Source of the DNA: Azolla caroliniana
Lineage: Eukaryota > Plantae > Polypodiophyta
DNA: 64,000 bases
Assembly: GCA_043228905.1 (NCBI GenBank)
Contig: JBHGNT010000001.1
Coordinates: 2,480,001 to 2,544,000, forward strand
Direction of reading: 5' to 3'
A program made the translations under genes and the position numbers. How positions within the stretch are numbered: the stretch's first letter is position 1; each line of letters starts with the position of its first letter. Shown here in pieces: positions 8,216 through 18,888 of the stretch. The notes below the pieces were generated by a model. It searched no databases. It was not told the DNA's origin and worked only from the letters and a program-made list of their open reading frames with translations.

Positions 8216-8517
8216 TTAACACATACATGTGATATTATCAATATAGTTGACAATGACAATGTACAAGAGGTCAAGCCAAAAGAGAATGGAGAAGTTGACA
8301 GAGTAGTGGTTAAAAATGGTGGTGTTTATCAATTATAAGGACTTAGTCAAACATGCGCACGACAATTGCATGTGTTCAAAGTCTCGTGCTTGGAAATCAC
8401 TAGTGCCACTTTGTGATAAATAAAATATGTCCAATAAAGCAAAATGAGTTTTATGTGTTTGTGCGAGTGAGTCTACACGTATCATAACAAAATCACAAAA
8501 TTTGATAATATGGTGAG

Positions 8518-8986
8518 AGTCAACTTGCGGAGTTTGATTTTTTCGTCGGTCTAATGACAAAGGAATTGCTTAGAGGATGCAGAACAACTTAGAGGAGATT
8601 GGGTCGAGAAGTCAAGAAGAAGCATTCATATTCCATTGATCATAATGACACTACCTACAACAACAATAAAAATAATAATGCCAAATATATAAGTCAATAG
8701 GTGTAAAGGGGCAAACGCCCCGGTCAAGAGGAAAAGAAGTCAAGCAACATAAATTAATAAAGTAAGGTAGTGGACACATAAATAAATAAAGAGAGCTAGC
8801 TAGTAGACAGATATTGATGACACATAACAACAGACGGCTGGAGTATGAAGTCAAGGATTAGTTGGACGTTATTGAATTTTTTATTATTTTGGCAAAATCG
8901 TCTGATATTAACATGGCATGGGGCCATGGCAGTTAATATTAACATATTTGATACGCATTAAAGCTGGGAAGGAGCTGTGTATAAAA
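8518..8986 (+). promoter_or_regulatory. W-box cassette and TATA box of small gene 9428
   Basis: RGTCAA (TTGACY on the minus strand) at 8518, 8610, 8692, 8722, 8738, 8849. TATAAAA at 8980; putative 5'-UTR intron acceptor (ttacAG) at 9299. Confidence 0.7.
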
Positions 8987-9427
8987 CGGCTTCCCCATCA
9001 TCATCTTCTTCTTCTCACACCTTATCTCGTTGTTTGGGTGCCCGGTTCCGGTGAATCCTGGGTTTGTAATGATCTAGTGTTTGTGTGTTCGTATGTAAAA
9101 TCATTCACACCCTCGGATCCAGTTTGTAATTTGTTCAAAATGTTGTAACTTGGTTTTGTCATGCGTATCTTGATGATGTTGTATTTTGATTTTAGGTTTA
9201 TATATAGCTCATTTATTCATTCGTCCGGTTTTCTTTTTTCTTTTTTCTTTTCTTTTGGGGTACTGAACTTTTGGTGATGTGTTAATATTGGCATTACAGA
9301 TCAAAGACCCGGCGATTCCTGAAAATAATTGATTTTGATCATCCTCCTTCCTGGCCTGGTCATTGGCACTAGAGCCCCTTAGTCCGCCATCAACCACTCG
9401 TCGTCTTAAAACCGGAAAAAGAAGAGA

Positions 9428-9754
9428 ATGACTATAACCATTCACAATCAGTGCAACGTCCCTGTCGAAGTGGACGTTATGAGATATGGTAATGGTCAGC
9501 AGGGTTCGGCGACCCGCGTGGATGCAGGAACAAAGCCATTGTCTCTGCACATCAACCATCAGGGCAATGTTTACCAGAACCATGACATTGACAAAATCCG
9601 TGTTACATTCCTGACAGAGCAAGGAAAGCGGATTATTCGCACCAAGCAACACCAGTTAACACAAGCGGATCGCAATGCCAAACATCTCTACTTCGTTATT
9701 ACTTCCGAATATGACCTCCCGCCGCCGACATATACTCCGCCACTGCGTGGCTGA
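9428..9754 (+). CDS. Small beta-rich protein, unassigned tandem family, copy 1 (108 aa, HGN/YGN subgroup)
   Basis: GC-richer ORF with A-rich start context behind a TATA box and 5'-UTR intron. About 40% identical by eye to 18517 (shared RxGN, LSxHIN, QNxD, RxTFL, QHxxTxADRxA, LxFVxT). Confidence 0.85.
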   Translation: MTITIHNQCNVPVEVDVMRYGNGQQGSATRVDAGTKPLSLHINHQGNVYQNHDIDKIRVTFLTEQGKRIIRTKQHQLTQADRNAKHLYFVITSEYDLPPPTYTPPLRG

Positions 9755-10854
9755 CAGTTTCTTTTGTGTTGGGGGTGGGGGGGGGGGGGGGTCGCAGTTG
9801 CAGTAGAGCCCGGGGGTGTCTGGAAATAAAAGGCCAGAGCCAATGGTGATTGATTGCGGGGGTGTCTTATGATTGGCTCACGTAGCCATTCTTGGATATT
9901 GGGGATGCGCAATTTATTCATTGGCTTTGAGCGGAGAGAAGTGGGAGGGAGGGATCATACTGATCCTCCTTTCTTTTTCTAATACTTAATTCATGTCTGC
10001 CGTACTTCTCTTTTTGTTATTATTATTTTTATGTATTTGTGGGAGCGAATTGATCTAATAATCCCGTACTTTCTGTTTGCTAACTAACTCTAAGTGAAGT
10101 GCACACTCCGTTTTATTATAATTTCATGTGTGTAATAAGTTTATTATTTGAAGGCCCTTTTCGTTCTCTCCAACTCTCTATGTCTCGCTCACTCTCACTC
10201 TCTCGTTCGTTCGTTCGTTCGTGAGGGTGAGGTTGAGGTTAAAATGCTTGAGAAAACAGGACCCTTCTTTGCGAGTGGATATATAGGCATTCTATTGGCC
10301 AAGCAAAGGCGAACACCAAATAAAACATAATTGGACTCCTTAGAATTTCAAGCTTAGCACTCGATCATCATGTGACATCATTATAATGGTATGTATGTAT
10401 ACAAGTACGACATATGAAGTCTTTTCATGTATTATTTACATCCACTTAAATGAATCATCTCTACTTTATATGTTTCCATCAAGTGCATTGTACTTACATT
10501 TGAATGTAAGAAATTGGTTGACATCCACGATTACAAAACCTTCACAATTATTGACGCTCGACTACAATATTAGTATAAAGCTGGTGGAACTGGTGTCAAC
10601 AATAATAGGTTATCTAAAGATATGATTCCATATGCATGTCATGTAATTAAATGTACAAGCTATTTATGACATTATGTTTTAGCTATAAACTAACCATTAT
10701 CTCATATGACAGGTGCAATGCCCATAGTAATTATTTTCAAACAATATCCATCCACACTTTGAGGTTATATGGTACTATGTTTTATTTACACACTTTCATT
10801 TTGCATCTTGCTTTACTTGCTTATATCGTACTAATATTGGGTGGGTGGGCAGGG

Positions 10855-17600: not shown

Positions 17601-17738
17601 AGTCTCGTGCTTGGAAATCACTAGCGCCACATTGTGATAAATAAAATATGTGCACTAATTCAAGAAATATGAGCGTTATGTGTATGTGCAAGTAGATACA
17701 TATCATAACGAAATCACAAAATTTAATAATACGGTGAG

Positions 17739-18134
17739 AGTCAACTTGTGGAGTTTGATTTTTTCGTTGGTCTAGTGATAAAGGAATTGCTTAGAGGATG
17801 CAGAACAACTTAGAGGAGAGTCGAGAAGTCAAGAAGAAGCATTCCTATTCCATTGATCATAATGACACCACCTACAATAATAATAATAATAATAATGCAA
17901 AATATATAAGTCAATAGGTTAAGTCAAGCAACATAAATAAATAAAGAGAGCTAGCTAGTAGACAGATATTGATGACACATAGCAACAAAAGGCTGGAGTA
18001 TGAAGTCAAGGATTAGTTGGACGTTATTGAATTATTATTATTATTTTTGCAAAATCGAGCATGGCATGGGGCCATGGCAGTTAATATTAACATATTTGAT
18101 ATACATTAAAGTCGGCAAGGAGCTGCCTATAAAA
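17739..18134 (+). promoter_or_regulatory. W-box cassette and TATA box of small gene 18517
   Basis: AGTCAA at 17739, 17827, 17909, 17922, 18004. TATAAAA at 18128; intron acceptor at 18409. Confidence 0.7.
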
Positions 18135-18516
18135 GCACTTCCCCATAATCTCTTCTTATTCTCACACTTCATCTCGGTTGTTTGCGTGCTTGGTGAATCC
18201 GATCTGCTGTGTTCCAATCCATTAATCAACCCTCGGATCCATTATTCTAATTATTATCATCATTTGTAATTCCTTCAACATGTTAATTGGGTTTTGTCAT
18301 GCATCTCTGATGTTCCGAGTTTAGTTTAGGTTTATATAGATCATTCCATTCAATTTCTCCGGTTTTTGGGTTCTGATCTTTTGGAGATGTGTTATTATTG
18401 CCATTACAGATCAAAGAGCGCGGGGCGATTCCTCTAAATAATTATTTGATCATCCGTCCTTCCTCGTCATTGCCAAGTCTAGTGGTCATCACCAGCGTCT
18501 TCATCAAAACTGAAAA

Positions 18517-18888
18517 ATGAACGGAAAGGGTACTCTACACGTTAAAAATGAATCAAACCTCACTGTTAGAGTCGAGCGTCTGCGGCATGGTAATGATGAG
18601 GTGGAAGGCGGGGTTCCGATGATGGTGCCTGCAGGACAATCCCTCTCTACGCACATCAACCTTAGCCATAATCATAATCAGAACCTGGATGTGACAGCAG
18701 TCCGCTTTACATTCCTGGAGGATAAGGTCAAGGAGGATATGGTCAAGGAGGATAAGGTCAGGGAGGATATGCGCAGGGAGCAACATGGGATAACAGAAGC
18801 GGATCGCAAGGCCAACCGTCTCGTCTTCGTTGTTACTCCCGCATATGTCGTCCAGAAGCACTCGGCTCCTGTAAATCCTAGAAGATAA
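18517..18888 (+). CDS. Small beta-rich protein, family copy 2 (123 aa, HGN subgroup) with an internal EDxVx repeat
   Basis: Paralogue of 9428 with the same promoter and UTR architecture; 15-bp repeat at 18718-18771. Confidence 0.85.
   Translation: MNGKGTLHVKNESNLTVRVERLRHGNDEVEGGVPMMVPAGQSLSTHINLSHNHNQNLDVTAVRFTFLEDKVKEDMVKEDKVREDMRREQHGITEADRKANRLVFVVTPAYVVQKHSAPVNPRR

Follow-up and report, generated by a model that had tools for sequence, protein, structure and literature searches.

Diverged gene bodies within a similar repeat backbone in a tandem array of small orphan genes of Azolla caroliniana

In the genes of the major histocompatibility complex (MHC) and in plant resistance-gene clusters the non-coding DNA is homogenised by recombination and gene conversion, while the selected coding parts keep old lineages. 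Venom toxin genes display a related pattern: their coding parts evolve faster than their introns and untranslated regions (UTRs) (PMC2474615). The locus described here lies in a stretch of 64,000 nt from the fern Azolla caroliniana (GenBank assembly GCA_043228905.1, contig JBHGNT010000001.1, positions 2,480,001 to 2,544,000 of the forward strand), which is referred to as the window. At 1-33 kb of the window five co-oriented homologous open reading frames (ORFs) of 96-123 codons, called genes 1 to 5, form a tandem array.

A sequence-only reading of the window had proposed that the coding sequences (CDSs) of this family diverge faster than their own promoters and UTRs, either by strong diversifying selection on the protein or by gene conversion limited to the flanks. 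The analysis led to a different description of the anomaly, which is a ~1-1.7 kb valley of similarity inside a ~90% identical repeat unit. We take the locus for a tandem array that evolves by birth and death and is made up of genes of a lineage-restricted family. Our preferred reading of the valley, held with even confidence, is that old, selectively diversified gene bodies lie in a younger or homogenised repeat backbone.

Gene layout and divergence along the repeat units

All five genes have the same layout: a TATA box, a short pyrimidine-rich exon 1, an intron with a conserved acceptor, a leader and the ATG. The coding part of each gene is a single exon and the intron is located in the 5′UTR. 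The TATA boxes are at 8980, 18128, 21960, 27188 and 31258, all on the plus strand. In gene 1 the promoter (8350-8979) is followed by the TATA box and exon 1 (8980-9061), a GT..AG intron (9062-9299), the CDS (9428-9754, 108 aa) and a 3′UTR containing a poly-G tract (9755-10100); the transcription start site (TSS) was inferred. The gene 2 promoter (17571-18127) carries a deletion of 72-73 bp relative to that of gene 1. By homology to gene 1, the TATA box, exon 1, a predicted intron (acceptor AG at 18408-18409) and the rest of the 5′UTR occupy 18128-18516, and the CDS (18517-18888) encodes 123 aa. The introns of genes 2-5 were all predicted by homology, the RNA evidence being confined to gene 1, for which contigs came from only two probable RNA runs. 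A contig of 765 nt from one of these (contig 17, run X4) joins 9041-9059 to 9299-10057. This spliced contig indicates that gene 1 is transcribed, that the 5′UTR intron (9062-9299) is removed and that the 3′UTR is at least 300 nt long.

The upstream regions of genes 1 and 2, which had been judged by eye to be 85-90% identical apart from indels, are 88-97% identical in aligned columns (8360-8953 versus 17581-18101, MAFFT), so that the estimate by eye was slightly conservative. Over the segment P600 identity is 0.92 in aligned columns and 0.71 if gap columns are counted, and the BLAST high-scoring segment pair between 8350-9352 and 17571-18464 has 74.9% identity over 1036 columns, gaps included. 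The two proteins are strongly diverged, as had also been noted (38 of 108 aligned residues identical, 35%), and both ORFs are open. The promoter of gene 4 aligns well with that of gene 1 (73.9% identity between 8183-9222 and 26457-27406; 0.82 in aligned columns of the promoter), while its protein barely aligns: it is 23% identical to the gene 1 protein, and the nucleotide identity of the CDSs is 0.45 against a shuffled baseline of 0.41. Compared with either of genes 1 and 2, gene 4 has a promoter of 82% identity and a protein of 23-27% identity. The values were taken from MAFFT alignments with shuffled baselines, as a gap-friendly aligner shrank the contrast. Shuffled controls gave identities of 0.43-0.45, which excludes chance as the source of the promoter similarity. 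Among genes 1, 2 and 4, an orphan promoter copy in the window and the metagenome contig L011 the promoter is 75-92% identical over ~600 bp. The CDS was less similar than the TATA-to-ATG stretch in all ten gene pairs.

Similarity is not restricted to promoter and UTR, the parts named in the first reading, but takes in the entire repeat backbone to the left and right of the gene. The repeat unit is ~9 kb long, and in ~5 kb of backbone, on both sides of the gene, the substitution distance K is 0.03-0.14. Between units 1 and 2 the Kimura two-parameter distance is 0.08-0.125 in the far-upstream blocks (4271-6175 versus 15473-17132, plus strand), 0.08 in the promoter, 0.15 in exon 1, 0.31 in the exon-2 leader, 0.51 in the intron (0.4-0.51 across estimates) and 0.59 in the CDS. 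Downstream, where 10839-14655 of unit 1 is collinear with 18998-22165 of unit 2 (plus strand), it is again 0.03-0.14 in five of six blocks (10839-14651 versus 18998-22158); the sixth block is gap-ridden. The proposal that UTRs are better kept than the CDS thus holds for exon 1 and the exon-2 leader but fails for the 3′UTR, since that of gene 1 could not be aligned with those of genes 2 and 4.

Silent sites follow the gene body. For genes 1 and 2 the silent distance dS is 0.60 and the replacement distance dN is 0.57, and where the two proteins have identical amino acids 9 of 37 codons differ, as against ~3 expected at K 0.1 (p = 0.002). The introns, 3′UTR and silent sites of these genes are 4-6 times more diverged than the ~5 kb of surrounding backbone. 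The change of K along the collinear repeats is sharp and block-wise, from 0.03-0.14 in the backbone to 0.3-0.6 in the gene body, with edges at ~9060 and 10100-10800. On the left, the divergent zone begins where exon 1 ends. On the other side, the alignment of genes 1 and 4 resumes at ~10105/28180, the edge of the zone, ~45 nt past the last transcribed base seen. Maximum likelihood (ML) distances between genes 1 and 2 were 0.09 for the promoter and 0.40 for the 5′ transcribed stretch.

Between units 1 and 4, K is 0.2 in the promoter, 0.28 downstream and 0.5-0.6 from TATA to ATG. The body-to-flank ratio for gene 4 and L011 is only 1.6-1.9. A relic of gene-3 type (13706-14655), which consists of promoter, exon 1 and half an intron and is cut at 14655, forms the end of the unit 1 backbone; it is 86-90% identical to exon 1 and intron of gene 3, which is the rate of the flanks. 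This relic also contains a (CTA)n microsatellite of ~50 bp (14170-14222) that is absent from the gene 3 promoter (versus 21681). Gene 5 differs from its allele by 0.27% over 753 bp, and copies of gene 1 differ by 1.3-2%. From pairwise distances the gene 2 intron had seemed nearer to L011 than to gene 1, a relationship rejected by the ML tree.

Selection, alleles, promoters and products

Pairwise ω (dN/dS), estimated by the Nei-Gojobori method and by ML, ranged from 0.76 to 1.9; no value is distinguishable from 1, and 0.3 is rejected in every case. The pair of genes 1 and 2 has an ω of 0.93-0.99. Model M0 applied to ten sequences gave ω 1.42 (p = 0.013 versus 1) on a saturated tree with 8.9 changes per codon. 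Comparison of site models M1a and M2a yielded a likelihood-ratio test statistic (LRT) of 45 for all ten sequences, where saturation applies, and of 10.95 (p = 0.004) for the least saturated gap-free subset (gene 5, P0006, P0003 and P0004; tree length 1.4). In this four-sequence subset two thirds of the sites are at ω 2.8, and M2a also finds a fully constrained class. None of 32 simulations under M1a reached an LRT of 10.95. The codon models were run with our own code, not with PAML, and deep pairs are saturated.

Between gene 4 and P0005, dS (0.21) is similar to the K of 5′ non-coding DNA (0.19) and dN is 0.36 (ω 1.7-1.9, p = 0.10). Near-identical copies of gene 1 differ by ~14 replacement and 3 silent changes. 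The frame has been kept open in ten diverged sequences of 96-123 codons, and all length changes are in frame; the neutral odds of an open frame are 0.003-0.19 per pair, and a 96-codon open run has a probability of 7e-4 at the local composition. These results support diversifying or very relaxed selection on the CDS, with mean ω ~1-1.9 and a site class at ~3-4. Such selection, with the frame kept open, makes the CDS the fastest-changing alignable part in every pair.

Two observations concern the coding region itself. In gene 2 a 15-nt in-frame tandem repeat (18717-18769; 3.5 copies, five residues each) explains a 10-residue insertion relative to gene 1. Minus-strand ORFs of 113-147 aa cover the CDSs of genes 1, 2 and 4 (9209-9652, 18553-18936 and 27472-27813), in the same frame relation to the sense codons in genes 1 and 2 and in a different one in gene 4. 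Because the spliced transcript is from the plus strand, these antisense ORFs are probably a by-product of GC-rich codons.

Alleles of gene 1 were compared in assembled contigs of a few runs. Relative to the window, run X1 showed no significant excess of differences in the divergent zone. The substitutions in run X2 comprise 12 transitions and 7 transversions. None of the ten CDS variants of gene 1 in X2 matches gene 2, from which they might have been copied; of the nine 3′ variants six agree with the gene 4 paralogue, which polarises them as ancestral and nothing more.

In run X2 the gene 1 CDS is also present as a second contig form (9492-9602), at a depth comparable to that of the main form, with six differences in 51 bp, all of them replacements (D32G, K36L, H41D, N43K and Y49H). 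This form may represent a third allele, a close paralogue missing from the sample or a patch of hypervariability. Site 9630, in codon 68, is triallelic: Arg in the window, Pro in X2 and Gln in L001, a near-identical metagenome relative of gene 1. The poly-G tract of the 3′UTR (9770-9790) is 13 nt shorter in X1, X2 and X4 than in the window, which may be due to a slip in assembly or to a real variation in length.

Within 500 bp of the TATA box the promoters of genes 1, 2, 3 and 5 contain 6, 5, 5 and 4 co-oriented W-box cores, where ~0.55 are expected from the background (33-64 kb of the window). The enrichment in these four of the five promoters has p values of 2e-5 to 2e-3 (gene 1, Poisson p = 2e-5). 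The six cores of gene 1 are at 8518, 8610, 8692, 8722, 8738 and 8849 (TTGACY on the minus strand, read as RGTCAA). The gene 4 promoter has a single core: five of six were lost, and overall identity is still 82%. Persistence of this identity despite the loss of W-boxes suggests that promoter similarity reflects recent ancestry, not constraint. The W-box is the binding site of WRKY factors. To judge from these motifs, the genes are probably under WRKY control and induced by stress or pathogens, and the family may have a role in defence.

No copies of the promoter were found at 33-64 kb of the window. When a metagenome collection that holds DNA of this plant was scanned with a 21-nt promoter motif, one true relative, L011, and nine chance matches were obtained. 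This contig of 4029 bp carries a sixth promoter of the A type with exon 1 and intron and ends in the leader, before the CDS; it is collinear with 6902-9046 of the window at 80% and shows that at least one further family member exists outside the window. A promoter borne by a transposable element is unlikely, given the lack of copies at 33-64 kb and the single related metagenome contig.

The protein family is previously undescribed and lineage-restricted. A Pfam profile scan of all five proteins gave no match at E ≤ 1, and gene 1, used as query in a word-indexed protein search, matched nothing but its 96% relative. When 1.8 billion representatives were searched exhaustively with a profile, five clusters were returned, to which a second profile search added one, the gene 5 allele; the six clusters come from short plant-associated metagenome contigs or from the window itself. 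Within the window there is no homologue beyond the five genes, and a six-frame hidden Markov model scan for extra members or relic ORFs recovered these five only. L001 is 97% identical to gene 1, and L018 is 99.7% identical to gene 5 in substitutions; P0006/L018 is the allele or orthologue of gene 5. Because L001 and L018 are near-identical to window genes, P0003, P0004, P0005 and L011 are probably paralogues from other places in this genome or in one very close to it.

An AlphaFold2 model built from six sequences is a small beta-sandwich with a predicted local distance difference test (pLDDT) score of 75, and the product would thus be a small beta-sandwich of ~100 residues belonging to an orphan family. 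Fold comparisons gave generic beta-sandwich matches throughout: the best Foldseek match in the PDB had E 1e-3 at a template modelling (TM) score of 0.40, the best VIA-align match (wide VIA set) had Z 8.2, within the noise range stated for the tool, and the Atlas fold search reached TM scores of at most 0.65, with unrelated families. The plant family DUF7748 of Pfam resembles these proteins in comprising small streptophyte proteins of ~130 aa and in a language-model feature score of 0.88, which is under the trust level of the tool; it differs in that none of the five proteins matched it by hmmscan (E ≤ 1). No signal peptide was seen by eye in the family proteins. Several begin with Met-Gly and have Ser or Thr at position 6 (MGGLLS in gene 5 and P0006, MGCLLS in P0003, MGSLLS in P0004), and from this N-terminal motif the gene-5 type is probably N-myristoylated.

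Possible origins of the contrast

If old gene bodies lie in a younger or homogenised backbone, the bodies of genes 1 and 2 would be older lineages than their flanks. Such mosaic ancestry could have arisen by exchange in either of two ways, whose direction and mechanism we infer: the backbone may have been homogenised by gene conversion or unequal exchange, with selection against converted gene bodies, or sequence from a divergent allele, or from a paralogue missing from the sample, may have overwritten one of the bodies. If balancing selection has long maintained divergent alleles of gene 1, both valleys, the allelic and the paralogous, would be explained. We favour the mosaic over local mutation because balancing selection covers both valleys and fits the selection results. 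Moreover, the gene-3-type relic at flank rate and the gene 5 allele at 0.27% make the excess specific to the gene 1/2 lineage, as an effect of history would be. The low body-to-flank ratio for gene 4 and L011 (1.6-1.9) and the many rearrangement relics of the array, among them a gene that breaks off in its intron, likewise speak for the mosaic.

Several results weigh against this mosaic ancestry. Trees built by ML from the promoter and from the TATA-to-ATG stretch agree in topology: both place genes 1 and 2 as sisters (100/99), and only branch length differs, the branches being 3-4.6 times longer in the latter stretch. A donor paralogue for either gene body was not found. The limits of the zone match those of the transcription unit on both sides, which exchange alone does not predict. 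The contrast recurs in a comparison at the allelic or near-species level: between run X2 and the window there are 3 differences in 1910 flank bases and 19 in 1884 zone bases (p = 4e-4). Finally, units 1 and 4 would need homogenised flanks, too. Gene conversion limited to the flanks, as originally suggested, agrees with the sharp block-wise change of K but not with the lack of tree discordance, and it is insufficient alone.

The main rival explanation is that genes 1 and 2, over their transcribed part from ~50 nt past the TSS to the 3′ end, mutate several-fold faster than their surroundings, as a result of transcription-associated damage or repair or of a recombination hot spot, and that weak constraint lets the CDS drift. 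We regard this as possible but unlikely. It accounts for the match between zone edges and transcription unit in the comparisons of unit 1 with units 2 and 4, for the joint elevation of intron, 3′UTR, silent and replacement sites with ω ~1 for genes 1 and 2, for the single topology of promoter and 5′ transcribed trees that differ in branch length, for the X2 contrast of 19 versus 3 between near-identical genomes (p = 4e-4) and for the triallelic codon at 9630. The acceleration would not be family-wide, however, as exon 1 and intron of gene 3 evolve at flank rate and the gene 5 allele differs by 0.27%; the ratio for gene 4 and L011 is only 1.6-1.9, and run X1 lacks a significant excess. The substitution spectrum is ordinary, and the observed/expected ratio of CpG in the CDS (0.8-1.0) is not depleted, which rules out methyl-CpG decay as the cause. 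We know of no such transcription-unit mutation mechanism in plants, and count this against local mutation. The more specific idea, that the hyper-divergence confined to the transcription unit is produced in the germline by a locally targeted, heritable mutational process that diversifies a defence-type protein, appears doubtful to us.

Diversifying selection on the protein was the other explanation first proposed. In its pure form, in which genes 1 and 2 are recent duplicates of the same age as their flanks and positive selection made all the extra divergence, it is very improbable. The site models do favour a class with ω >1, and between gene 4 and P0005 dS (0.21) stays near K (0.19) while dN reaches 0.36. 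For genes 1 and 2 the expectation that dS would be close to flank divergence was contradicted: dS is 0.60, intron K is 0.4-0.5 and the 3′UTR is unalignable, against a flank K of ~0.1. A six-fold rise of intron and silent divergence is beyond the reach of selection on residues, and ω for this pair is 0.93-0.99. The promoter contrast exceeds what selection produces, because intron, 3′UTR and silent sites are also 4-6 times more diverged. Diversifying selection thus stands as a component, by the ω values and site models, but is insufficient alone. Of the combination that had been named as speaking against it, dS much greater than flank divergence with dN/dS well below 1, the former was observed while dN/dS is ~1.

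Alternatively, the gene bodies could show the true age of the duplication, with the promoter held back by purifying selection on a W-box cassette. The enrichment of co-oriented clusters in four of five promoters and the 75-92% identity over ~600 bp among genes 1, 2 and 4, the orphan copy and L011 are in line with this explanation, which we nevertheless consider improbable: non-promoter backbone at a distance of several kilobases, microsatellites included, is equally similar (K 0.03-0.14), the boxes are no better conserved than the spacers between them, and in gene 4 five of six W-box cores disappeared while identity stayed at 82%. It is scarcely credible that the ORFs are neutrally decaying relics and not genes, although relics would also give ω near 1, pairwise ω does not differ from 1 and the proteins contain no known domain. 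Open frames persist in ten sequences against neutral odds of 0.003-0.19 per pair, splicing is seen in the gene 1 transcript, the beta-sandwich model from six sequences is confident, the GC content of the CDS is 0.40-0.49 compared to 0.35 for the array, and M2a identifies a fully constrained class of sites.

Rest of the window and comparison with known systems

Gene 3 extends from its TATA box to 22580 (21960-22580), with a predicted acceptor at 22196-22197 and a CDS of 96 aa at 22290-22580. Gene 4 (26457-27850) consists of the promoter (26457-27187), the TATA box at 27188, a predicted acceptor at 27468-27469 and a CDS of 97 aa (27557-27850). In gene 5 (31258-31935) the predicted acceptor is at 31535-31536 and the CDS of 114 aa at 31591-31935. 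All three are on the plus strand. The array also contains partial copies. An orphan promoter of the A type (1263-2174, plus strand) has no family ORF downstream, and shorter promoter relics are found at 5857-6088, 15238-15467, 16804-17050 and 26125-26462. Directly 5′ of the gene 2 promoter there is a relic of a gene 3′-flank (17247-17560, plus strand), similar to ~10393-10711 and 28466-28789 (K ~0.34). These promoter and 3′ relics without gene bodies indicate frequent rearrangement in the array. Runs X1 and X2 each hold the gene 1 promoter form and the gene 2 form, the latter with joints at 8702/8703-8776; their presence in two independent assemblies shows that the duplication is no assembly artefact.

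Public runs labelled leaf metagenome hold parts of the window. Outside the array an apparently intact Ty1/copia retrotransposon (45391-51119) has gag and pol ORFs (46528-47589 and 47619-50663) between long terminal repeats (45391-45833 and 50677-51119) that are 97% identical, and a 208-bp tandem multiplication (45618-46249) adjoins its 5′ repeat. On the minus strand, 37690-44015 contains exon-like ORFs that encode an SNF2-family helicase with a RING finger, which by its motifs is RAD5-like. About 13 copies of an 86-bp unit, 94-97% identical, occupy 55134-56253, directly 5′ of the first ORF of a kinesin-like gene (56546 onward). At 1-463 a stretch of 202 bp recurs at a distance of 261 bp, the two copies being 99.5% identical.

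Where proteins evolve faster than the DNA that regulates them, a molecular arms race is usually at work. Unnamed, lineage-restricted and equipped with a defence-linked type of promoter, the family is a candidate new class of immunity-related proteins. Unusually, divergence takes in the entire transcription unit and not the codons alone, and the same contrast is seen between near-identical genomes. If exchange and balancing selection are responsible, the locus offers a compact model of how tandem arrays keep diversity; if local mutation is, it would represent a phenomenon new in plants.

The general picture of WRKY-controlled defence promoters, a cluster of TTGAC(C/T) elements in the same orientation less than 500 bp from the TATA box, is reproduced in the array. 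Gene 4 departs from it by lacking the cluster, and WRKY binding here is putative. Somatic hypermutation of immunoglobulin V genes is an analogy for local mutation only. There, too, the zone starts shortly after the TSS, spares the promoter and ends within ~1-2 kb; here, in contrast, the changes are in the germline of a plant, the X2 spectrum has no deaminase signature and some family members are unaffected.

The nearest described pattern is that of the snake-venom toxin families, phospholipases A2 and three-finger toxins, which like the present genes form tandem multigene families by duplication. Venom toxin genes keep their introns and UTRs, whereas here the intron, 3′UTR and silent sites are as diverged as the CDS; the similar parts in the array are exon 1, promoter and backbone, and the exon-2 leader is also better kept than the CDS. 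The proteins are not cysteine-rich, have no signal peptide by eye and belong to a plant. MHC genes and plant resistance-gene clusters share with this locus the tandem arrays with relics and chimeras, the homogenised non-coding DNA and the old coding lineages. They differ from it in that the present gene is tiny and encodes neither a leucine-rich repeat nor a peptide-binding domain, that its intron lies inside the divergent zone and that the trees show no discordance.

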